DNA of 63,669 bases, filler included, from Klebsormidium nitens (lineage: Eukaryota; Plantae; Klebsormidiophyceae): NCBI GenBank assembly GCA_000708835.1. It is 6 parts of 6 records of this genome, joined end to end, with 100 filler letters (N's around TTAATTAATTAA, not from the genome) between each part and the next. Parts side by side here need not be neighbours in the genome. Positions count along the whole stretch, not along the records: positions 48,698 to 61,061 come from DF238117.1; 5 more parts are not named here. One strand, given 5' to 3'. Below are positions 48,290 through 63,400 of the stretch, piece after piece (the first letter of the stretch is position 1; each line of letters begins with the position of its first letter). A model generated the notes under the pieces. The model worked only from the letters and a program-made list of their open reading frames with translations. It was not told where the DNA came from and searched no databases. Position numbers and translations under genes: made by a program.

Positions 48290-50607
48290 CTGGAGGCGAA
48301 CCTTGAACCCTACACGCGGTCGCTAGTCTGGCAAATCGTACGAAAATATGCAGGTAATCGAGGTAATACCACAGCATCAAAATTGCACGAGACACATAAA
48401 ATTCTTAACTTACAAAACATCCTGGTCTGAACACGTAACTATAGTAACCGTAACTGTAAGTGTGACTGTAACTGTGACTGTGAATTCAAGCATTCTTTTT
48501 ACATTAATAGGTACATCGGAACTGTCTCTTGGGCGTTTTCTGCTATGCACAAGCACTTTCATACGAGCTGCGGTGCACGGGAGTGCACCGCAGTGAANNN
48601 NNNNNNNNNNNNNNNNNNNNNNNNNNNNNNNNNNNNNNNNNTTAATTAATTAANNNNNNNNNNNNNNNNNNNNNNNNNNNNNNNNNNNNNNNNNNNNTCT
48701 ACTTTGCAGTCAGAAGTATGCTTGCATTGCTGGAAGGACGTTTGGGAAGTAGGGGCACTGCCCTGATCTGCCTCTCCATGATTCTTGACTGACTGAACGC
48801 AGGCAGAAACAAGACTCTGGAATTTTGAAGGACGTCCTGAGGGACTTGTCCAACAAGAGAACAGAAGTTGTCTTGAGCAGAAAGACAGCAATTTTTCTGA
48901 GCTGCGCCATCGCTTGAGAACGCCTGCTTTCATAGTTTCCGCACATGTTAGCTGATCGTGTGTAGTTATCCTGCCAGCTCTCTGCATATAGCTGGCCAAC
49001 CATCACATAACCACTTCCAACCAGCTGGTTTCATCTCATGCATTGAAAGGTGGTCAACAGTGACAACATGTTGAGCTACTGAAACTATGGCACAATTCAA
49101 CTAGCGGCTCGCACGTTACGGATCTCAATGTGGTGTGAAAGAGCTTTTCTAAGATTATCCAACTTTGAAGCTCCTATAAACTCGTTTAAGTTCCAGCCAT
49201 GGTTCCCTTCTGAAAGACTACCCACCTCTGCTCCTTGGGTCGCCATGCTGGTCTGATTGCGGGACCCTCCACAGCAAAAAGGCCCCACGGAGGAGCAGGT
49301 GATCGCGGTCGCCCCAGAAACTGCCCGCAACACAGAGGTAGTCAGCCAATGCTGCGTAGTACCAGTGGGCGAAGCCATAATAGCTCCGGTGATCGAAGAT
49401 GAGTTCAGGGCGCTGATGTGAAGGGGCTTGAACTGAGAACTAAACTTAGAAACTTGGGGAGATTGTCGACCAAGGGCTCCTTTGTGCAACGCAAATGCTG
49501 TGCACACGAAGCGCAAAGCCATGGAACGCCTATGACCGCATTGGGCCGCCAGAATAGGTCTTTTGGAATCCCTCTCCTTTCAATCATTCCAAGAAAGCGG
49601 AAACACCGTTGGCCTCGAAAGAGGCGCAGCTGCGATTCGATCCCCTTCCTCGACTCCCTTGCTAACTTGCAAGAAAGGCGTTCAAACCCTTGCTCGAAGC
49701 GGCTTTCAGCTTGATGAGGAGCTTTCGAGCTGCCAAACCCTGTGCATGTCAGGGCCCAGCTCGATGATTGCCACGCTTGACCATGGCGAAAAGACAGTGG
49801 GGTGACACGTGTGGGTCGAGCTTTCAATAAGGAGCGTCTCGACCGTCCGATACGCGTGGACAGGTGTATGAGACCGTCGATCGTACGTCTGCTTTTTGCA
49901 TGAGAGCGCGCGCCGGATTACAGGNNNNNNNNNNNNNNNNNNNNNNNNNNNNNNNNNNNNNNNNNNNNNNNNNNNNNNNNNNNNNNNNNNNNNNNNNNNN
50001 NNNNNNNNNNNNNNNNNNNNNNNNNNNNNNNNNNNNNNNNNNNNNNNNNNNNNNNNNNNNNNNNNNNNNNNNNNNNNNNNNNNNNNNNNNNNNNNNNNNN
50101 NNNNNNNNNNNNNNNNNNNNNNNNNNNNNNNNNNNNNNNNNNNNNNNNNNNNNNNNNNNNNNNNNNNNNNNNNNNNNNNNNNNNNNNNNNNNNNNNNNNN
50201 NNNNNNNNNNNNNNNNNNNNNNNNNNNNNNNNNNNNNNNNNNNNNNNNNNNNNNNNNNNNNNNNNNNNNNNNNNNNNNNNNNNNNNNNNNNNNNNNNNNN
50301 NNNNNNNNNNNNNNNNNNNNNNNNNNNNNNNNNNNNNNNNNNNNNNNNNNNNNNNNNNNNNNNNNNNNNNNNNNNNNNNNNNNNNNNNNNNNNNNNNNNN
50401 NNNNNNNNNNNNNNNNNNNNNNNNNNNNNNNNNNNNNNNNNNNNNNNNNNNNNNNNNNNNNNNNNNNNNNNNNNNNNNNNNNNNNNNNNNNNNNNNNNNN
50501 NNNNNNNNNNNNNNNNNNNNNNNNNNNNNNNNNNNNNNNNNNNNNNNNNNNNNNNNNNNNNNNNNNNNNNNNNCAATTTGTACATATGATTAGATAAATT
50601 TGCAAAC

Positions 50608-50790
50608 TTGGGCCCGGCGCCCCTCACATTGAAGTATGGGGGCCAAAGGGCCCCTCAACGATCCCCTTTGGGGGCCCGACGGGCCCCCTGGTCTCGGGCA
50701 TTGGGGGCCCGTTGGGCCCCCAAGCCTCTCGACTATTGGGGGACGATATTGGCCATTGGGGGCAATAATGGCTGGTGGCGGGCCCCCAGT
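50608..50790. repeat. GGGCCC/GGGGGCC-rich cluster next to a gap
   Basis: Many GGGCCC or GGCCCC motifs within about 180 bp. Confidence 0.5.
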
Positions 50791-50921
50791 GGAAACACTG
50801 ATACAAGCATAAAACTAACTATTATTTTTTCCCGACCGACCGACCCACCCAAAAGGGGGGTGGACCGGAAACCGGGAGTTAACTTCGACCCGCCTTAGAA
50901 CAGTGACAGTGACGCTGACAG

Positions 50922-51334
50922 AGGGGGGACAAGGAGAATGATTCTTTTAGCAACCCTGAGCCCGGGGGCTGTTGGAAGGTGCCTTTTGTGACTTGGAGTC
51001 AACTTTACCGGGGTCTGGGGGATCGCGTGTGTCAAAGTTCTCGGGTTGGAAAAACCTTCATCTATCTAACACACGGTAAGATGCATTGCCCCAGTAGATC
51101 CTCTCCGACTTCATATTGAAGTGCAGCTAAGACAAACCCGAAGCCTGACCCAAAACCATAAGGGCCGACGAGGAGCCAAGCACCGTTCGATGATAGGCAT
51201 CCCTACATCTGATGGTTACAAACCTGCCATCTGCACACGTGGATCTCTGGTCGAGCTGAAAGCGTCAGGAAAGGCACCTTCCAACAGCCCCCGGGCTCAG
51301 GGTTCCGAAAAGAACCATTCTCCTTGTCCACCCT
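50922..51334. mobile_element. MITE, 413 bp, with TIRs of about 65-70 bp, flanked by CTGACAG direct repeats
   Basis: Left AGGGGGGACAAGGAGAATGATTCTTTTAGCAACCCTGAGCCCGGGGGCTGTTGGAAGGTGCCTT is the near reverse complement of 51271-51334. CTGACAG lies at 50915-50921 and 51335-51341. Confidence 0.85.
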
Positions 51335-52022
51335 CTGACAGAACCCGTGGAAGGAGAACGTGGACTACAGTTTGCAGTCCCGGACCCCACACCGATCGGT
51401 ACTCGGTGCGCGCGCGGCCGACGTTGCGTGACGTCATTTATTGCCGCACTTGAAACCTCGGAAACCCTAGAATACAGTGCCGCCCGCGAATGCCCGCGAG
51501 CTGCATGAAAGTGTGCATGGTGCAGCTGTTCTTCTGGCTGCACACTGCGCACTGCACTGTTGCACAGCTGCAAAGTCCCTGCAAAGCTGCAATTTGCAAC
51601 TCAGAAAGCTTGCATCAGGTTCACAATGGTTCATTCGTAATGAAAGACGCAATCAGTGGAGCTGGCTCATGCGCCACTACTACTGATTGTACAATGGCAA
51701 CCTGCGATTTCTGAGAATGCATCTGCGCATGGAGAGGCAGGCGGCTGTTCAATGGGGTTTTGCAGGCGGAGCTTCTCTGAGCTCATTTGTCGGATGAGAT
51801 TAGCAGTTGCTGGAATATTGAACTGCTCATTGCTGGATACAGAACCGAAACGGACTTCATGTTGGCCTGCCAATGCCAGCCTGGAGGCCTGATCATGAGG
51901 GAATCATGAGAAGATGAGAACAACGTCGGTGATCAGCTCTCGAGTCTAGAACCTGATGCAGATACCAGAAGTTACGAAGGGAACGAATCAAGTTGCAGCT
52001 CAATTGTACTACTGAAGCTCAA

Positions 52023-55000
52023 ATGGAACAATCTGAAGCTCTTGATCGGTCTTCTTCTGATGACGAATTCGCTGAAAGGGCTCAGAACTATGTGGACCGG
52101 GTCAAGCTTTGGGGTGAACATGAAAGGGCAGCGATGGCTGAACGGTTGGAAAGGCACGAGCAGAACGAACCTGTGGTATCTTCGGCAGAGCTCCTTCCAA
52201 GAAATTCAAGCGCTCCTCTCTTTGCGGAGGGTCAGCTGCTGCTCCTACAAGGGCTCAGATCGAAGGGTTCGTCAAGAAAAGAAGCGATTCGAACAGGTGA
52301 CATCGAGAAGTTGAGGCAAATTTGGGAAGTTCTTGGCCGTTGGAGAATTGAGGAGCTCAACGGATCGGGTTGCCATGAGAAAATGGTCCACGAGCGAGCT
52401 GCAGAAACGCCTTCAACGTCTCAAAGTGTCGATCAAAACGGGAAAGCGCAATCGGTGCATCAAGATGGGAGGGCTAAGGTCGAAGAGTGCGACAGCAGAG
52501 TCGGCAGCATAAAATGCTCCCAATTAGTCCACTCTAATTCGGAGACGGAGGAAGAATCCGACGAAGAGGACGAGGACGAACCTGCAGATTGTGCTCGGGT
52601 TGAGGGGAGGTTGCGGCGGCCAACCAACGAGCCCGCCTCCAGTCAAAGACATATCGAACCCCCAGCTCAAGTGCTTAAACCGCTGATGTCATATCTGTTG
52701 CATCATCAGCGGACCTATCCAAACTTAGCTGCTATAGCTTCTAATGTCTGCCGGGACTGGAGGGCAGTGTATGAAGATGCATGCCAGGAGCTCCTCTTCG
52801 AAGACACCGACCTCCCGGCAGAAGGAGAGGACAATGAGGCATTCACCTCTGGCCGCCATGGCACGCCCTTCTCCCTCTATTGTCGGCAAGATTGCTCATG
52901 TCTGGTTTTGGCTGTTTCTCACGGCCAGGCACACCAGATCCACGCAGCTCACGAGCAAGCCCTTCAGCTGCAAAAACGGGAGGGTCCTTCGAAGGCCGAG
53001 GTCTGGCAACGAAAAGGGAACCGGAGAGTTGCCCCAAATGAACGCATCTCGTGCTCATCACCAGCGTTCGAGGACTTCGCAAAGTCCTTTGCTGCTACAC
53101 ACATGAAAGTAGGAGAAAAGATGCACGTACAACGGCCAGTCAAGCAGGAACCCGAGCGGGACGAAGAGCCTGACGTCGAGAGGACTGACGACGGGCCTGG
53201 GCTGTTGCTTTGTGTGCATGGAGGCAAGTTCCGTCTACTGGTTTTCCTAAGGTCGGCAACTGCCTCAACAGTGGCTTTGAGGTGCACATGCTGGCAAATG
53301 ATATTCTCAACAGTCCAAAGATCGAGAAGTAAGTGATTCAAAGCTGCCTCAGCTAAATTGCTTGTGCATTGCATCCTGCAGCCGCTCGCGTCCTCCACGT
53401 CGGCACCAACTTTTTTTACAAGAAGAGCGCCCGGAGCGGAACCTCCAGACTAGAAGACTGGGGGATTAAAGTGGTACCGAGCTTCGAAGAGCTGAGAGAC
53501 TGTTGCCGAGGGGCAAATAGAAAGTGTCGCAAGAAGCTCGATGTGACTGCTTTGAAGGGAGAAACGTGCTGCAAACGGAAAACGTCAAGTCAAAGCGGGG
53601 TGCTTGCGGATTCTCAAAGCTGCTCGAGGATTCCCCCGGCCTCCTTCGGGACTGGAATGAACAGTATCATGTCGAGCACGCCCACGGCCACAAAACGTCG
53701 CAGGTTCAGCTGGGAATCTTATCGGAGATGCGCAGCCGAGGCATGTGCCAAGCTTCAATGAAACTCGTCCTCCAAACTTCATTGAGTGGGAGACGGCTGC
53801 AAGCGGTCCGCGAAAAGACGCGTGCCGCTGGAAACAGCCATCGTACTTTCGCAACGTAAGATTTTCATTGCTCCCAATCCGATTCTAGTCATAGCTGATC
53901 TGATTGCACACAAAACACATAGACATGCCTTACATAGGTTGCGTGCATGCATGTGTAGGCCTGTGTTTTCTCACATATGCTGAATGGTAGCGGCACACTT
54001 TCATCATTTACAAAAAGGACATCCCATAAGTATACATAGGACAACCTTAATATGCAACGCCCTGAAATCTTTGAGAAGTCAATTGTTGCTTTGCAAAATG
54101 GCGCACGGCCACAAGGGACGCGCGCCGAAGAACAAGATTTCTCCCGAGACGAATGCACGTATCGTGCAATACGTCTGCGAAAACACACGAGCCTGTCCGG
54201 AAAAGAAGCGTCTACTCATTATCCAACAGGGATCCACCGGAAAGAAAGTAAGAAAGTAAGTAACATCTGACTCGAGCCATACTCCAACTTTATACTTTTC
54301 TTTTTAAGCCTGCCCTACTTCCATTCGAAGTTGCTGCTTGCAAGCGCCCCAAAGCGTCGAATCAATCGTCTTCGGTCTGCATGTGAATTCCAAAACCACG
54401 TGTTAGTCTTTCGACGATCGTCGTTTCTCGAGCAGGCGCTCCATCGCCGGATGGTTGCGGAACATCCCGAGCTGACCGTGGACTATCGAACGTTTAAGAG
54501 CATCATCAAAAGCAATCTTGATTACAGGTGAGGATTAAATTTGTGCGCAACGTGGTCCCTCCAACGAGCTGGATTTATGTATCAGTCCGATTGATTGAAT
54601 CTCGAGACAATAACCAGTACAGTAGTCAATCGCAGGTTTGTTTTGTTGACTTGCAGGATCGTCAGGAGCCGAAAGGACCACAACTTTTGCCCACACTGTC
54701 TCGACTTTGAGACAACGTTGACCGCAGTTGAGCGGGAGCTGAGAAGGTAAGAAGCACTCCCCTCGACGGCGACAGCTCTAGCTCGGATCAGAAATCGGAA
54801 AAGAATGACTGCATGCTCGAATGGGACATCCGATGACTACGGCAAGCTGCTGACGTCATCAGCAACAATCATAACGTCATTACATTTCCGCTTTTGATAG
54901 CGTTGGTGCGAAGAGCAAACAAGTCGGAACTGCCCCGCCGCATTGGATGACGCAGCGTTTGAGGACTCTCCAAAGCGAGCAAAAACGCTTGGAACAACAA

Positions 55001-58000
55001 TACGGGAAGCACGAAATGTGGTGGCGCTCGAGGCGACTATTCGCTAGAAGTGAGCTCACAAGTGACCAGCTTTGAAAAACTTTCGTCCTCCGGCATGTGT
55101 GTTCGTCCAAAGCCGCGGGTGCTCTGAGGTTTTACTAAGAAAGGGAGGGCACACAAGCAGACTGGATTCATACCTTCTTGTGTCTCCATGCAGCGCTAGA
55201 GGAAGTGGCGAAAGATCAGCTCCGTGCGCTTGGACAGACGTCGACGTCACACCCGTTCGCCAGCAGCGCCAGCAGTATGGTCTGCCAGGAGGATAAAAAA
55301 GGACTACTCAATCTGCCCATCTTCCAACGGGATCCAACAAGTGCACCTCTAGAAAAGACTGTGATCGAGCCACACGGGATCATAGACTGTCGGTCTCTGG
55401 AAGCTTGGTGAGTGTGTCGCGCTGCGCCTCTGCGTTTCTTCCAAAAGCTGCATTAATAATGAAACTACTTGCTATGTAAGCAGATTGCTTATTAAGCGGC
55501 GTTCTCGGTTTCAAAAGAGCGTTCAAATTCAATTTCTGCAATCGGCGCACAAATACTCTGCAGGGAAATCCTTATAAACAAAGGCCAGAACGTTGGGGGC
55601 GAAGCGTTCGTCGCAATCAACGTGCTACTGGCCTGGGCGCTGTCCAATTTGAATGGCGAAAAGGTGTTTGTCAACCTGCTCGACAACGCCTCGGACCTGC
55701 ACAACCGGTTCCGCTTCTGCTTACAGCAATTCCTTGTGGATCTGGGTGGGTCCCGCATTATTGGACGGCATTCAAAAACATCTCAGAACCGGCAGCTAAG
55801 AAAGTATTGAAGAAGGTCTTGTCAAGCATCCTTTGCGATTGCATGAAAGCGTGCAGAACGTTCGGATGGCAGGCGTTTGGCGTCCAGCAGAAGCATACAC
55901 AAGTAGATCGTGAGTAAAAGTTATCATGCAGGTGTTGTCGAGCGAGCGGCGGTCGTTTACCTGCCCGCACACCACGCGAAGCACTTCATGGACGCCGGTA
56001 AGTTGTCCGACCCGTTCTTTTCAAGGACTGCTTGAAACTTCCTCGTCCGCTAAACATACGAAGCATTCCAAACTGCAGAGGCAATAGAATGAATGTGAGG
56101 CTTGTTCAAGACGGTCCAATTCAACATAACGCCGGCTTCGTCTCGGTCCAACCAACATTCACCATCCTGTACAGTACATGGCTACCTGGAGATAGCTTCA
56201 AGGACGACGGACATCTTTTCGCGTGACAACCTCGCCGCCTTGTGCTCAAGCCTTCCCCGGGTCCACGGCACATGCGCAAACCCCGAGCTCTTCGAGAACC
56301 TCAACGACTTTTTCAGGAACCACTACAACTCGGCCAGCATGCCAAACATCAAAGCGCACGCCCTTGTAGTCGCCTCGAAGGAGCTTAACGGGGTTGTCCT
56401 GCTCAAAGAGAATCCGGAGGACAACGCATGGAAGAGTTGGCAGATGCGGCCGATGAATGCGAGTTCCGGACTCAAACGTGAAGACCTGGACTCGATGAAG
56501 ACGGTTGGCCAGCAGACGCCGTTGAGCGCAGTCGTGTCTACTCTCGAGAAGTTGGGTCCGAACTGCGAAAAGATGCGGCACGAAAGCGGGTTCTCCGGGA
56601 TGCAGGTCACGCTTCCCGAGCGCCTGGACCTCACCTCTTTCGAAGCGCGCTCCCCGGGGTCCATTCTCCGCCCAGCAGTGCGAACCGGATGGAGGCCTGG
56701 GAGGTTGCAGCCTTTCATAGGTGCCCCCGCGAGCGCGTTGAAACGGTCCCTGCGGAGAATGCAGAAACCCTGTTGCTCCAGCCGCAAGAGAGTCTGAGGT
56801 TCTCTTCTGCTCGCTTTCACGGCCTATTGGAGCTCCGCAACGATGCGTCCGCCAGCAAATCGCTGAAGTCGGTGTTCGAAAGCGTGTTGGAGATCCCAAA
56901 ATTCAAAGTCGCAGTTGTTGCGAGCGGACAAGAAGCGTTCAGCCCGGAGGCGTTCATCAAGGAAAGCCGCTCTCCGTTTGCAGTTTTCGCTTGCCAGATT
57001 CTTGACGTGAATCAGAGCCTGCTCGAGGGGCACACGGTTATTCCCCTCCAAAAGCGAGCAGCAAAAGAGGCGCCGGCCTTAAGCCCAACTCGCCAGCAAA
57101 CAAAGGAACTTGCTCACATGAAAGTCGTGGGTCTGTTCTCACCGGACGTCGACGAGCTCCGGGAGTGGGCGGCCGCATGGGGCTGCCGAGAGGAAGACGT
57201 TCTGGACTGGTTCCTGGGCCGTCGAGGGAAGGCGGTCGACGAAGAGGGCCCCCCGCCCAAGAAGGCCAGGATGCCAAAGAAGAGTGCGCTTGCAGCGGCG
57301 GCGCCTGCGGTCAAGAGGGAGAGGAGGCTGGAACATGAGCAAAACGGAGTGGAAAGGGCAGGGGAAGGGAGCGGAGGAGGCGACGAAGAGGACAAAGAGG
57401 AAGCGAGGCAAGGAGCGGAACGGAGCGGAACGGCGGACGGAACGGAACGGAACGGAACGGAATGGCGCGGTGATTGGGCCGCAAGCGAGCGGTCTAGGGC
57501 ACATCGCGGAGATGGACGTGCAACAGAAGGGAGCGCCCGGGAGTGAAAGAGAAAACGGAGCAGGATTGGGAGGCGAAGCAGAAGAAAGGTTGAGAAAAGG
57601 AACAGAACCGAGGGGAGAATGGGAAGGCGGGGACAGCGCCGTAAAGATTGAGCAGATTCGTGAGACTAGAGAGGAACCCAAAGACAAGACGGAGGGGCTG
57701 GCGCCGCAGTCAGGGTTGAGGGCGGGACAGGGAAAGGTCCCAAAACCGCTCTGCGCAAACACCTCTCCGCAGGCGTCAAAAACGGAGAGAAAGCGGCCGG
57801 CGGCAGATGCAAAGACGGCTGCCGCGACCAAGCGGATGCGAGCCCAAGCTGCTGCATACAAGGCGAGCATGCAGGCGGACTCGAGCATCCTGGACCCGAC
57901 CTGGTTCTCCGACCAGCAGCGATTGTCGGGTGACCAGTTGTCCAACGTTTTCTCGACTCTGTACATAAACCCCCCGGCAGACCTAGCGCCCATTCCCACG

Positions 58001-59639
58001 TTCACAAACGAGCATCTCGCTATGAAGCTGATTGAAATCTCAAACGGAAGCAGAGCGTGGCCCTCGAAAATCGTTCAGAAAGTGAAGGAGATGAACGGTT
58101 GTGCAGTCTTTGTGGTCGGGGACTGCTCTCATTGGAGGTCGGTTTTTCTAGATGGGCGAAGCAAAACCGTCTTCCTGTTTGACCCCTACTTCGAGAAGGC
58201 GTTTGGAGGCGGCGGCCTCGAAGAGGCTCTAAACAGAGCATTCAGCCAGAGCGAAGGCTGGGGACATGACCGGATCAAGCTACGGTTGCAATCCAACGAC
58301 TTCCAATGCGGTGTGTCGGCAGCCTTTTTCCAGGAGCAGGTCCTCCAATTCGTTTGGAGAGGGGAGGCGGAGGGCTACGTTCAAAGGTTCACTGAGTTCT
58401 TCCTGCGGGAGGTGCAGGCCGAAGGGCTCCGGCCACTTCCTTACGGCAAGGCGCCTTCTAAAAACCAGAGCCTGCCAAACAAAGAATTCATCCAGAAGAA
58501 AAGGACAGCCCTAAGAAGTCTCCTGGAGAACCGCAAGGAGTTTCTACCCCTACAGCCAGGCGGCGCACAGCCGCGCCCGCAACCCGTAGCAGAAAGACCC
58601 GAAAGCTCCGCCCCGGCTGCGCCTCCAACTGCCTCGCAGCCCTTTCCTCGAACAAGTTTGAAGAGCAGCGAACAAAAGGGGAAACTTCCTAAGAGCGCTT
58701 ACCAGGAGCCTGCTCATCCTCGGGATAGTGCCCTCCCCACAACCGAATGCAAACAACAGGGGACTCTTCCAGAACTAGGTGGGGCACAATCCGGATTTGA
58801 CGAGGGGTCTCCTCCGGCGCCAGGTCCAAGTCACGCGACACCTGCGACAGCGAAAGGGAGCTGCAAGGGATCAAAGGAGGACAACAAGGTACTATATGAG
58901 ACTTGGCTTCCGTTTTTCATTCCTGCCTGTAGGTGCCAACCCTAGGGCCGTCGATCTCAGCAAATGCTCGTTCTACACCACCGGAGTGTATCAGATCCCT
59001 GAACCCTCGATCTCAGCAAATGCTTGAACTACACCACCACAGTGTTCAGATATTTGACCCCTCCAGAACCTGATTGTTAAGACGAATTGCAGGGTGCAAA
59101 CGTCTAGACCCACTTGTTGATGCAGTTTGGCAAACCAAAGAAGGCTACCAACGCTGAGTTGAACGTCAAAGGCGCAAAGAACGCCTTCAACTATTTTCAA
59201 CAGCTTCTGAAAGAAGTAAGGACTGAGCAGCATGTCTTTGAGTTTGAAACGGAGCAACTGAACGATGCTCTGTGTTACTGCCGCAGTTCGCTGCTTCGTT
59301 CAAGTTGATCATCAATCTTGTACAATCAGACAATCAATTCAAATTTTCGCTAAATCCAGTATCACCCCTGCAATGCAGACTGCGGAAAGGATGTTATTAG
59401 CCGACATTGCCACAGATCTCCCCATCGGACAAGCAGAGAGGGCAGCCCTGCTGGATGCATCGACCGCCACTACCAAACCCAACACCGCTGTGTGCTCTGT
59501 AGCTTGGCGTCATGCTCCCGCAGAGATAAAACAGAAATGCACAGACCTTGCGCTAGTTGACCGAGAGCGGGCTCAGAAAGACCGGGCAAGTGCACTCGCT
59601 CTGATCAGTGGCGCGCAGGACATTGAACCAGAGACGTAA
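52023..59639 (+). CDS. Multi-exon F-box-like, Sola-type transposase, Ulp1/C48 protease and HMG-box protein; about 3 frameshifts
   Basis: Phase-consistent exons: to 53223 (GC donor), 53382-53855, 54076-54247, 54436-54527, 54657-54746, 54901-55049, 55194-55407, 55564-55745, 55932-55997, 56175-58888, 59126-59215, 59379-59639. Motifs: ASNVCRDWRAV (F-box-like); HGHKGRAPKN, HNFCPHC, QEDKKGLLNLP, LLDNAS, PAHHAKHFMDAVHG (transposase, candidate D-D-D); SHWRSVFLD..FLFDP..QSNDFQCG (Ulp1); KNAFNYF..AWRHAPAEIKQKCTDLALVDRER (HMG). Confidence 0.75.
57408..57465. repeat. (GGAAC)n/(GGAGC)n pentanucleotide microsatellite inside the transposon ORF
   Basis: GGAGCGGAACGGAGCGGAACGGCGGACGGAACGGAACGGAACGGAACGGAATGG, located in the overlap of ORFs 56689-57546 and 57284-58945. 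Confidence 0.9.
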
Positions 59640-60370
59640 CCCCGCTGACTTGGCAGGGACTGTTGCTTTGGCTGATGACCTCACCTTCATGTGATGCCAT
59701 TGTCTTGCACATCCTGTAGCTGACGCCAGAATGCATCCGTTCCGGGACCTCGACAGAACCCCTCATTGAATGCATGTTGAAGGATCACAATGAAGTTGCT
59801 GGAATTGCATCGTGCCTTGCATTTCTACATGCAAGCTGCGGAAAGAGCTGTAGGCATTCTCGACAAGCCTATGCTGTGATGTTCTTGGTCAGGAGCTGCG
59901 CTTTACTACCAACTGCCAGCTGTCCCCTACAGCGTTTGAAAGCGAGCTGGTCATATTTCCTTTCTAAGCAGAGCCCGCTGATAGCCGCAGCGCCGCCGCC
60001 TGCAACTGCCTCAGCCTGCCCACCCGTGCCTTCCTAGAACGTTCATACATCCGTCCTTTCAACTGAAACTTCTCCCTGTACAGAAATGAAGCATCTTCCT
60101 CGATGGCAATGTGGATAACTGGGCTCCATGCTGAGCCCAAAGCAGCTTCAGAAGAGCCGCCAAAGTGTAATGGCGGCTCTGCAGTGTCCTGGCTCCTTCC
60201 CTATGCAGCTTCTCTGGCTTGCAAAGTTGCAGCTGTAGCTGGCAAAGGAGTGCGCACTGCGGAACGCGGCCGCATCGATGAGTCACAGGCGGTGCCGCGC
60301 GCGCACCAAGTACCGATCGGTGTGGGGTCCGGGACTGCAAACTGTAGTCCACGTTCTCCTTCCACGGGTT

Positions 60371-60406
60371 CTGACAGTGACATTGACAGTGACAGTGACA
60401 GTGACC
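60371..60406. repeat. (GACAGT)n hexamer tract, right part of the insertion target
   Basis: CTGACAGTGACATTGACAGTGACAGTGACAGTGAC. The left part, CAGTGACAGTGACG, is at 50901-50914. Confidence 0.9.
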
Positions 60407-63400
60407 GGGGCTCTCAGGTGAGCTTAGGGTTCTGTTGCAAACCTGTAACGGTTTGTGGCAATCGACTAGCGTTGTGTTAGGGTTAAGTAATTTCCCAGTG
60501 ACATTAGGGTTACTCACTGACAGTGACAACCGGGCAGAGTACTTTTGGTTTAGTGTATGTAGCCACTTCCTCTGACCCGGTGCCCATCTGTACCGGAGGC
60601 CGTACCGCAAACTGTACGGTAAATCTGACAACTCTGATCCGGAGTTCTGATCAAAGGACCTGGAGAGGGTTCACATTGGACTTTCGATCAACTTTTGCTT
60701 TGTTTTGAGATGTACCCAGATGACGTGTGGTGACGTTGTAGCAGCGAGAACTGAAGTTGGGTTCACATTGGGAAAACCGCTGTCGAATGCATCATCAGTT
60801 CCGGCGGAGACCACGTGCGATCACGTGGATGTACAGAATGGTACATAACCAACTTACAGCCTTTCGGGTCCGCCGGATCTGAGCCCTCAGATTCGCAAAG
60901 CGACCCAAAAGATGCATCCTGAGCCGTTCATTCTTTTAGAATTTCATTTTTCGATTTACCGGGCCGAAAAAGGAAAGATGGAACTTCGGACACCCTGCGG
61001 ACAGGAAGAAGATGACCAGGATGACTTGCTTCAGAGAGCAACATTTGGGAGCTATTTTGTGNNNNNNNNNNNNNNNNNNNNNNNNNNNNNNNNNNNNNNN
61101 NNNNNTTAATTAATTAANNNNNNNNNNNNNNNNNNNNNNNNNNNNNNNNNNNNNNNNNNNNAGACTCCTTGACTGAATATGGAGCCTCTTCGTGAGTCCT
61201 AACTAATCAGTCTTTGGGAGGGAAGGCAAGAAGACGCAATTTTTCTGAGAGGCGCTCTTGCTGAGGTGATCCCAAGGCGTGCTGAAAAGCTTCGCATGGT
61301 TTCCGCACATGTGAAGTAGACAGGCAGCGTGTAAACCCTGTCCAACCGTCACACCCTCACGAGCTACCTCAAAGGGGGTTCTCAGGCGTTTTTCACCTCA
61401 CGTCTATTAAGCGCCGCCGCCCATACGTCGCACCATTTACACCTGAAAATGTCAACACCAACAGTTGGCAAAGCAGCGAAGGCCTTCCGCCCATCTGCTT
61501 CCGCCGCCGCGGGTGCTTGATCCCCTCCGCGAGCGCGCGCGCGGCCGCCTCCTCGGTTCTCCGAGGAGAATCAATCCTCCTGCCCAGCTACTACTTGTAT
61601 TTGATTGTTCTTTACGTTTTGACTTGAATTGAAATTGGAGTATAACGTACTATAGGCCCCTGTTTCTCTGTGGCGTTGGCAAAGATCCCTGGGCAGCCCT
61701 CGAAGTCGCTCCTGGACCTCAACAGCCGTCGGTGGATTCCTTGCTTGAATCCATTTCTGCTGATGTATCTGGGTATATCGAAGTCATGTTTCGAAGTTCC
61801 TCAAATTAAGCAAGGTTCTTCACTGCCAAGATCTCACGTGAGTCCACTTCGTTCGCGTGACTAAAAGCCGGGGCGGTTGTTTTGCCAAAATGAATCTGAG
61901 TCTGGAAGGAACGATCTCTCTTAGATCCAGATTTGGGGCCAATCAGCGGGGCGAAGCCTACGCGAAGCTGAGTTACGCAGATTCTCTCCCCCAAAAATGC
62001 ACCACATTCATTGTTCTCGCTGGTACTATTCCGGTCGTTCTGAAAGCCGCGCCGCTAGACTAGGTTGCCTCTGATGTGCGCGTGTGCATGCGCCCCGGCT
62101 CGTTTGCCCATTACGAGCGAACGTGCGTCCGCACGAAAAAGCCAAGCCTTCTGCAAGACTAAGGCGGCCTGCTAGGTGCCAGCATTAAGCTGAGGAGCGG
62201 GCAGCTCTGAGCGCGTTGCCGTTGTCTGCTGAGGACTGCGGTAATTGCCACGTGGCCTTGATAGTTATGCCTGTAAGACGTCCGGGACGCCTTATCCCGG
62301 AACGTCCAACTACGGTCCGTGTCTCGCCCGGACGCACCCGCCGAGCCGGCCGCGCAAGCGGCCGCGGAACCGCGACCAAGTACCACGCTCCGAGTCGCGC
62401 GCGGTGCTTTGCGCGGGCGCGCGAGCGGTTCTAGAGCTCGCCGATAAACAAATCTGCCGCTGAAAATTGAAGACCTTCTCAAAAGCGCGCGCGCGGCTTG
62501 GCTAGTGGGTCGCGCGCCCAGCTCGGAAAGCGTAAGGTCTGTGCGAGCTTCTCATTCTGCATGTGTTGATTTTATATTCGTGATATTTAAAGTGAAGCGA
62601 GTGTACTTGAGCGGGCAAGGAGGATACAACCGGTGACATGTAGTGGGGGCGTCCCATCTATCCCTACCGCTCCGCTTGCGCACGGTCCGAAGCCGCATTA
62701 GATACACTGCGCATGACTTTCTTTCCTTGGTTTCGCTTCGTTTCGTCATCTCAAGCGATAAAGTGTCTTCCCAGCTTCTAGTGTACGTTTGTTTAACCAT
62801 AATAAAGGTAGGCGTGTGTGCGGATCGAGCATACGAGTTTGTCGGAACCCTAAGTCAAATCCGGTAAATGTTTAGGCTCGAGCGGCAGCTTGTGATTTGA
62901 AGGCACAGATGATTGCCTACACGTTAACGTTGGAGTGCAGGGATGCCTCTCTATGGCCACAATTAATAACTGGAAGGGTTGAAGAAAGCCTGGGGCTTTT
63001 ATAGTGAAGACTTGGGTCATCGTGGCCAAACTTTTACTGAAGCAAGATGCGTTCGACAACGGCCTTAAAGCCGTGAAGCATCAAAGTTTCGGTTGTCCGC
63101 ATACCTACACGCTCGTTAGGCAATATGATCTCGCACTACTTGCTTCAGTTGCGCTAGCCTGAGGTCGTTATTGGGCGCTCCAACGGAGCGGCCGGCCGAA
63201 AAAAGCCTTTGAATATTTGTTTTAGAACCAAAATGTTGAAGACCTTATGTCGAAGATTGAGATCACTCGTAATTGGAGATCGATTATGAGATTCTGATCA
63301 GCATTGATCCAGTATGGTTGCTCCTCGGTGAGCCTCTGGTGCCGCTCTGAGGTGGATATGGAAGGTTTAAGGTCCTTTTGAGGGAGCCGTCGAGTTACCG

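Follow-up and report, generated by a model that had tools for sequence, protein, structure and literature searches.

A 9-kb terminal-inverted-repeat transposon of Klebsormidium nitens whose predicted spliced frame ends in an Ulp1-like cysteine protease

What kind of transposon combines, in one long spliced gene, the motifs of a possible transposase with a protease of the Ulp1 type, and to which superfamily could it belong? The question is raised by a 9,029-bp element at positions 51342-60370 of the window analysed here (the whole stretch of DNA, 63,669 nt including filler), in which positions 48698-61061 (DF238117.1) make up one entire contig (12,364 bp) of Klebsormidium nitens, a charophyte green alga. 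The original prediction described the element as a complete Sola-like transposon whose single transposase carries F-box-like, DDD, Ulp1 and HMG-box segments. We find that it is a real, intact-looking DNA transposon of the class II, cut-and-paste type with terminal inverted repeats (TIRs), and that the single copy examined is autonomous-looking. Taken as a whole, it is probably best explained as a cut-and-paste transposon with one spliced frame, comprising an N-terminus that resembles a helix-turn-helix (HTH), a core of the IS630-Tc1-mariner (ITm)/Zator kind and a C-terminal protease of clan CE.

The limits of the element are set by the following features:
51342-51418 (+): left TIR, 77 bp, beginning with AACCCGTGGAAGGAG, complementary to the right end at 76 of 77 positions
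60294-60370 (-): right TIR, 77 bp, with one mismatch relative to the left end
51335-51341: left flanking CTGACAG, a putative target-site duplication, which doubles as the right flank of a neighbouring element resembling a miniature inverted-repeat transposable element (MITE)
60371-60377: right flanking CTGACAG, followed by a (TGACAG)n microsatellite
60372-60405: (TGACAG)n array of period 6, reported by Tandem Repeats Finder (TRF)

Both the near-perfect 77-bp TIRs and the coordinates of a complete TIR transposon with a flanking repeat, as originally predicted, were recovered exactly. Since the heptamer that flanks the TIRs is almost a palindrome in its own right, the repeat finder draws the inverted pair out to 84 nt (98%). 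A 19-nt terminal probe has sites at the two element ends only, compared with an expectation of 0 from shuffled sequences. The (TGACAG)n microsatellite of the insertion site is also present on the left side, at 50900-50921.

The direct repeat claimed for both sides is there, CTGACAG being found at either end, but the notion of a fixed 7-bp duplication had to be given up. The heptamer occurs three times in succession (50915, 51335 and 60371), always inside the (TGACAG)n microsatellite, and CTG-A-CAG is palindromic about its central base, with the result that a base still pairs if it is counted with the "TIR" instead of the "duplication". The apparent 7-bp duplication is therefore ambiguous: the flanks permit lengths of 7 bp (with a TIR start of AACCC), 5 bp, 3 bp (GAC, with termini AG...CT) or 1 bp, and exclude 4, 2 or 8 bp, i.e. 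they admit odd lengths only. We also depart from the earlier suggestion that the high identity of the TIRs indicates a recent insertion. Insertion does not make the two TIRs of an element identical, as it does with long terminal repeats (LTRs), and selection for transposase binding keeps TIRs alike, so their identity provides no date; youth is better indicated by the frame, which is intact, and by the heptamer, whose three copies are identical.

The frame in question runs on the plus strand from an ATG at 54098 to a stop codon at 59637-59639. Its exon structure was predicted from the sequence, by reading three frames and testing the junctions by script:
54098-54255 and 54309-54527 (+): exons 1-2, the likely true transposase N-terminus, with the HTH-like stretch GRAPKNKISPETNARIVQYV
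54657-54746 and 54901-55049 (+): exons 3-4, with a C-x2-C motif at 54688
55194-55407, 55564-55745, 55932-55997 and 56175-56477 (+): exons 5-8, the candidate RNase-H-type catalytic core
56606-57309 (+): exon 9, a linker region
57362-58888 (+): exon 10, a low-complexity Glu/Arg/Gly-rich stretch and then the protease domain
59126-59215 and 59379-59639 (+): exons 11-12 (stop codon included), the C-terminal tail, based on the intron phases and a coding score of 15.5 for exon 11

These 12 exons give 1,320 codons with no internal stop. The 11 introns (52-237 nt) are all GT-AG and consistent in every phase, which agrees with the number and the phases originally predicted but not with the one GC-AG intron among them; this is not needed, the GC donor at 57307 being just an option beside the GT donor at 57310. 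Another alternative, an exon at 55787-55910, was rejected, as it would need introns of 41 and 22 nt.

The corresponding database entry, P0001 (GenBank GAQ92852.1, hypothetical protein KFL_011680010, 1,319 residues), is named in UniProt by its protease domain and was identical to our protease-like query along the full query length in the exhaustive HMMER search. The GenBank model has 7 introns identical to those of the 12-exon model, lacks exons 1-2 and exon 11, and begins with two doubtful 5' exons (window positions 52090-53252) joined across a 1.4-kb intron. The omitted exons have good splice sites and score positive for coding with a score that was trained without them, and exons 1 and 2 are joined in phase across a 53-nt GTAAGT..AG intron. 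The GenBank model thus seems to be a mis-joined transposon gene. For the searches reported here the exons were submitted singly, by reference, and P0001 was the sole spliced sequence used.

A few local peculiarities of the gene may be mentioned. Exon 9 contains a homeodomain-like motif (…DELREWAAAWGCREEDVLDWFLGRRGK) at 57103-57231, for which support from hidden Markov models (HMMs) is missing. Exon 10 includes a (GGAAC)n pentanucleotide array at 57412-57462, which encodes ERNGT-like peptide repeats, and a strong purine skew marks the region 57200-57700 (GC skew 0.39, AT skew 0.59). Intron 10 contains an imperfect direct duplication of 42 nt (86%, 58948-59045).

According to the alignment and the structural model, the C-terminal part of the spliced frame is a genuine CE-clan cysteine protease, whose predicted catalytic residues are complete:
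57848-58561 (+): CE-clan (Ulp1-like) cysteine protease domain, in exon 10
58130-58132 (+): His of the protease
58181-58183 (+): Asp of the protease
58289-58291 (+): Gln of the protease
58307-58309 (+): Cys of the protease

Searched by itself, this region gives a weak match to the CE-clan enzyme ChlaDub2/SnCE1 in which all four motifs (His, Asp, Gln and Cys) line up, and Peptidase_C48 clusters came out at the top of the protein feature search (0.95). We found 14 relatives of the protease, the closest being 41% identical; three are from the prasinophyte Cymbomonas tetramitiformis and the remainder are mostly metagenome-derived records. In a 13-sequence alignment H95, P113, Q148, C154 and G155 are invariant, and the Asp site D112 is occupied by D, but by E in two sequences. 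The profile made from this alignment identified ChlaDub2/SnCE1 among the PDB entries (1e-8), as well as ULP-domain proteins, adenain, ChlaDub1 and Ulp1. The AlphaFold model of the domain has a predicted local distance difference test (pLDDT) score of 84.7, and the top 50 structures reported by Foldseek all belong to the CE clan (probability 1.0), including poxvirus I7L, SnCE1, OtDUB, SENP2, Ulp1 and adenain. The Ulp1 protease with H-D-Q-C residues noticed in the original prediction is thereby confirmed.

The domain shares its fold and the His-Asp-Gln-Cys arrangement with the CE-clan proteases Ulp1/SENP, ChlaDub/SnCE1, OtDUB, adenain and I7L, and the closest solved sequence is that of Simkania SnCE1/ChlaDub2, which has been crystallised with SUMO1. 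It differs from the CE-clan family Peptidase_C48 in falling below the Pfam threshold: the Pfam Peptidase_C48 model gave no match on this protein, and its relatives reach only 15-19 bits versus a cut-off of 20.7. The protease must therefore be regarded as a divergent branch, and its identity to solved structures is only 10-18%. Two of the relatives, P0009 and P0015, carry the same divergent Ulp1-like domain beside an Exo_endo_phos/endonuclease-reverse-transcriptase domain and, by sequence, look like non-LTR retroelement proteins. The endonuclease domain in these two proteins suggests that the protease family travels with mobile elements in green algae.

The candidate transposase core lies upstream of the protease, in exons 5-8, where the following residues were read from motifs:
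55292-55294 (+): D1 of the candidate triad, in CQEDKK (D268 of P0001)
55682-55684 (+): D2 of the candidate triad, in LLDNASDLHN (D346 of P0001)
55991-55993 (+): D3 of the candidate triad, in HFMDAV (YLPAHHAKHFMD(387)A; D387 of P0001)

By eye, the spacing of the candidate core is D-77-D-40-D. The Pfam family DUF7869 gave a weak match (E=0.047) to residues 324-413 of P0001, colinear across three spliced exons (6-8). The feature search with a protein language model ranked DUF7869 clusters first (0.84-0.86), and in one of these clusters 11% of the members also carry DDE_Tnp_ISAZ013. Two independent weak leads, Pfam and the feature search, agree on DUF7869 for the core. The N-terminal exons yielded weak matches to HTH_32 (E=0.048) and to an ISNCY transposase N-terminus (E=0.036). 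We conclude that one long spliced frame joining the HTH-like N-terminus, the candidate D-D-D core and the CE-clan protease is supported. The earlier proposal of one protein with a DDD core and an Ulp1 domain accordingly stands as regards the single long frame and the Ulp1-like protease; its F-box and HMG parts are not supported (see below).

Several points weigh against this interpretation of the element and should be taken together. The catalytic triad was assigned by eye, from motifs only, and the DUF7869 match amounts to 13.7 bits, compared to a cut-off of 26. Pfam, NCBIfam and PHROGs reported no significant transposase family in any open reading frame (ORF), exon or P0001; PF07592 and the NCBIfam ISAzo13 model gave no match even at E<=10, and the PDB sequence search with P0001 found no transposase. 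Word searches with the P0001 core return P0001 alone, these searches seeing only relatives that share exact 5-residue words. The exon structure is a prediction from the sequence, and mobility, duplication length and autonomy are putative, one copy having been available. Finally, the substrate and the role of the protease are inferred by analogy.

The searches had the following scope and further outcome. The exhaustive HMMER search covered the protease region, and the core was searched by word search. The Pfam scan covered 78 plus-strand ORFs of at least 36 aa, the exons and the ORFs of the flanks (E<0.1), and it revealed no F-box, F-box-like, HMG_box, Peptidase_C48 or transposase family in the 78 ORFs and the exons. 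PDB sequence searches with the HTH exons found no transposase match, and the word search with the protease ORF returned nothing informative. Scans of metagenomes with the TIR and with the protein P0002 gave no match, and neither did scans of prokaryote genomes and viruses with P0001. In the literature searched we found no paper on DUF7869 or on the 9-kb element.

DNA binding, catalysis, target choice and the role of the protease are inferred here by analogy, and the cycle of the element would be as follows. The HTH-like N-terminal exons would bind the 77-bp termini, and the D-77-D-40-D core, of the RNase-H type and the ITm/Zator kind (DUF7869 being the best lead), would excise the element, for whose reinsertion CTGACAG-like palindromes could then be cut in a staggered way. 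As has been proposed for the Ulp1 domain of Zisupton, the protease may act on the transposase or on chromatin, silencing or repair factors of the host, removing SUMO or another ubiquitin-like modifier; candidate substrates are SUMO, ubiquitin and NEDD8. In Ginger1 and Mutator-like elements, too, a role of this deSUMOylation type has been suggested for the Ulp1 domain (PMC2836005). Alternatively, the protease might process the long protein of which it is a part. The threefold function that the original prediction suggested for a single protein, namely countering SUMO-dependent silencing, recruiting SCF ligase and bending DNA, is speculative.

To our knowledge, Ulp1/OTU proteases have repeatedly been acquired by unrelated transposons (Ginger1, Mutator-like, Zisupton and CACTA), and we know of no one who has shown what they do there. 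Precedents for the fusion of a transposase with an Ulp1 domain are documented: Ginger1 transposases have a C-terminal Ulp1 or OTU domain, with introns in some of the genes, and among Mutator-like elements KI-MULE and CUMULE carry an Ulp1-like protease on large TIR elements (PMC2836005). The present element resembles Ginger1 in that the transposase polypeptide ends in an Ulp1-type protease and in the functional idea of a link to SUMO/ubiquitin (PMC2836005), but the Ginger1 core is Gypsy-integrase-like (YPYY, zinc finger, GPY/F) and its duplications are 4 bp long. With Zisupton/KDZ, KI-MULE and CUMULE it shares the large TIR element with an Ulp1-like protease, which is either fused or a second gene in those elements; in contrast to them it has no KDZ or MULE domain match, and their even-length duplications do not fit its flanks. 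In practice the finding is one of transposable-element annotation and not of a new kind of system, a TIR transposon with an Ulp1-like domain being an already known type. Klebsormidium is a streptophyte alga with a small genome, and its apparently intact fusion adds one more independent transposon-protease case, possibly a testable one.

As to the superfamily, the specific assignment that survives best, possible though still short of probable, is a lineage related to Zator/ISAzo13 within the ITm group, with termini AG...CT, a 3-bp GAC duplication and an Ulp1-like protease gained secondarily. The DNAxxH pattern of ITm transposases has a similar counterpart in the D-N-A-x-x-x-H that follows the second Asp of the element, which further resembles Zator, ISAzo13 and other ITm elements in its HTH-like N-terminus. 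The D-D spacing is short, and the D2-D3 spacing of 40 lies inside the range of the ITm families, which span DD34-DD41 with Zator included (PMC7386202). Zator and the bacterial ISAzo13 both make 3-bp duplications (PMC10045372), a length that the heptamer permits. The weak DUF7869 match and the DUF7869 cluster with 11% of members bearing DDE_Tnp_ISAZ013 point in the same direction. On the other hand, the models PF07592 and NCBIfam ISAzo13 are silent, as noted above, the nature of DUF7869 is undocumented, the third catalytic residue was read as D, and the 3-bp parse is just one of four. Unlike Zator, ISAzo13 and ITm elements, the Klebsormidium element has no significant HMM match and no TA duplication, and it is set off from them by its 9-kb size, its 11 introns and its 77-bp TIRs. 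We have not seen a protease fused to the transposase described for the ITm/Zator group.

More tentatively, the element could represent an undescribed eukaryotic cut-and-paste lineage, at the level of a family or a superfamily, of streptophyte algae. Such a lineage would be defined by a DD40D core with a remote tie to ITm/Zator, a 7-bp CTGACAG duplication and a fused deSUMOylase- or deubiquitinase-like protease, the protease family being one that occurs also in green-algal non-LTR retroelements. The known range of eukaryotic DDE/D transposons would be extended, should the core prove to form a new branch close to ITm/Zator and its target to be a palindrome of odd length.

It is unlikely that the element is non-autonomous or gene-carrying, i.e. 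that its transposase is encoded elsewhere, the inner gene is a captured or chimeric ULP-like gene of the host and the "core" is no transposase at all. Plant transposons often capture and amplify ULP-like genes (PMC2836005 and references therein), which together with the lack of a significant transposase match and the occurrence of the protease relatives in quite different proteins speaks for such a capture. Arguments for a transposase gene are the HTH-like N-terminus, the D-D-D motifs, which are spaced much as in ITm elements, the lead to DUF7869, the long intact frame with 11 introns, and the failure of word searches, which need shared exact 5-residue words, to find a host paralogue of the core.

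We also doubt strongly that the element belongs to Sola, as a divergent relative that has acquired accessory domains, as the original prediction had it. It has TIRs and a candidate D-D-D triad (by eye) in common with Sola, as well as the lack of a classical Pfam transposase domain, and a Pfam match would not be expected, since Sola cores were without a Pfam model in earlier surveys (PMC5751038). However, Sola makes 4-bp duplications, with an AWWT target and GGACCG termini as the hallmarks of Sola1 (PMC3845634), whereas the flanks of our element admit a duplication of 7, 5, 3 or 1 bp and not of 4 bp, and both the AWWT target and the GGACCG termini are absent. Moreover, no match of P0001 ties the core to Sola, and the sole leads for the core, DUF7869 and DDE_Tnp_ISAZ013 (with ISAzo13 and Zator behind them), point elsewhere. 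The element is thus not demonstrably Sola, being set apart by duplication length and termini.

Membership in Zisupton/KDZ is very improbable: Zisupton, as reportedly described by Bohne et al. in 2012, looks the same overall, being large and bounded by TIRs, with several exons in the transposase gene and an Ulp1-like domain at the C-terminus, but there is no KDZ Pfam match in the 78 ORFs or P0001, the 8-bp duplications of Zisupton/KDZ (like the 8-10 bp of Mutator-like elements) do not fit, and the short D-D spacing is unlike that of KDZ cores. Three further candidates were set aside: a Dada-like element, with no tRNA or Rfam gene at the target; Tc1/mariner-pogo, with the TA duplication absent at both junctions; and Ginger1, with no integrase-type Pfam match in the 78 ORFs or P0001. 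A cut-and-paste transposon with an ITm/Zator-like core and a protease within one spliced frame remains our preferred explanation.

Two of the modules originally assigned to the transposase, the F-box-like segment and the HMG box, were not corroborated. The former lies outside the 12-exon model:
52023-53336 (+): ORF1, acidic, 437 codons plus stop, an open frame with a weak positive coding score
52674-52769 (+): F-box-like motif in ORF1

The F-box HMM gave no match at E<=10 for 52647-52862 and none at E<=1 for the whole ORF1, and no PDB match was found for it. A two-intron, in-frame path from ORF1 to the exon starting with ATG 54098 exists, but shuffling the DNA in between also produced such a path in 61 of 200 cases, and at stricter splice-site scores none is left. 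ORF1 is better viewed as a possible separate accessory gene, because its path to the transposase exons is no better than chance; this is more likely than its forming part of the transposase as an F-box module.

The HMG-box-like motif (KNAFNYFQQ ... VAWRHAPAEIKQK) is encoded in part by exon 11 and in part by exon 12, and there are about 20 residues too many from its first helix to its Trp. Searched singly, exons 11 and 12 had no match in Pfam or the PDB. In the model of exon 12 alone, in which the exon 11 part of the motif is not included, four helices are predicted (pLDDT 72), with no match to the HMG fold, which is L-shaped and has three helices. With the exons taken singly, neither HMM nor fold recognition thus lent support to an HMG box, and we treat it as an unverified resemblance only.

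The element has a close neighbour on its left side:
50922-51334: MITE-like element, 413 bp, its TIRs about 65 nt long (4 mismatches; inverted pair 91%), abutting the 9-kb element

It is bounded by CTGACAG at 50915-50921 and 51335-51341, and the arrangement of the two elements looks like two successive insertions into one palindromic site. AAGGAGAA occurs in the TIRs of both at roughly equal offsets (a weak TIR similarity), a weak hint from the sequences that related transposases may serve the two kinds of termini. That this neighbour has the heptamer in common with the 9-kb element, and a TIR that resembles its own in part, fits a target preference of the transposase.

ORF, tRNA and Rfam scans of the contig turned up neither a recognisable gene nor a tRNA or other Rfam RNA in the flanks of the element. 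The contig itself is interrupted on the left side:
49925-50573: gap of N's within the contig

Adjoining this gap, the region 50668-50772 consists of tandem repeats of 33 bp and 19 bp with GGGGGCCC-type palindromes.

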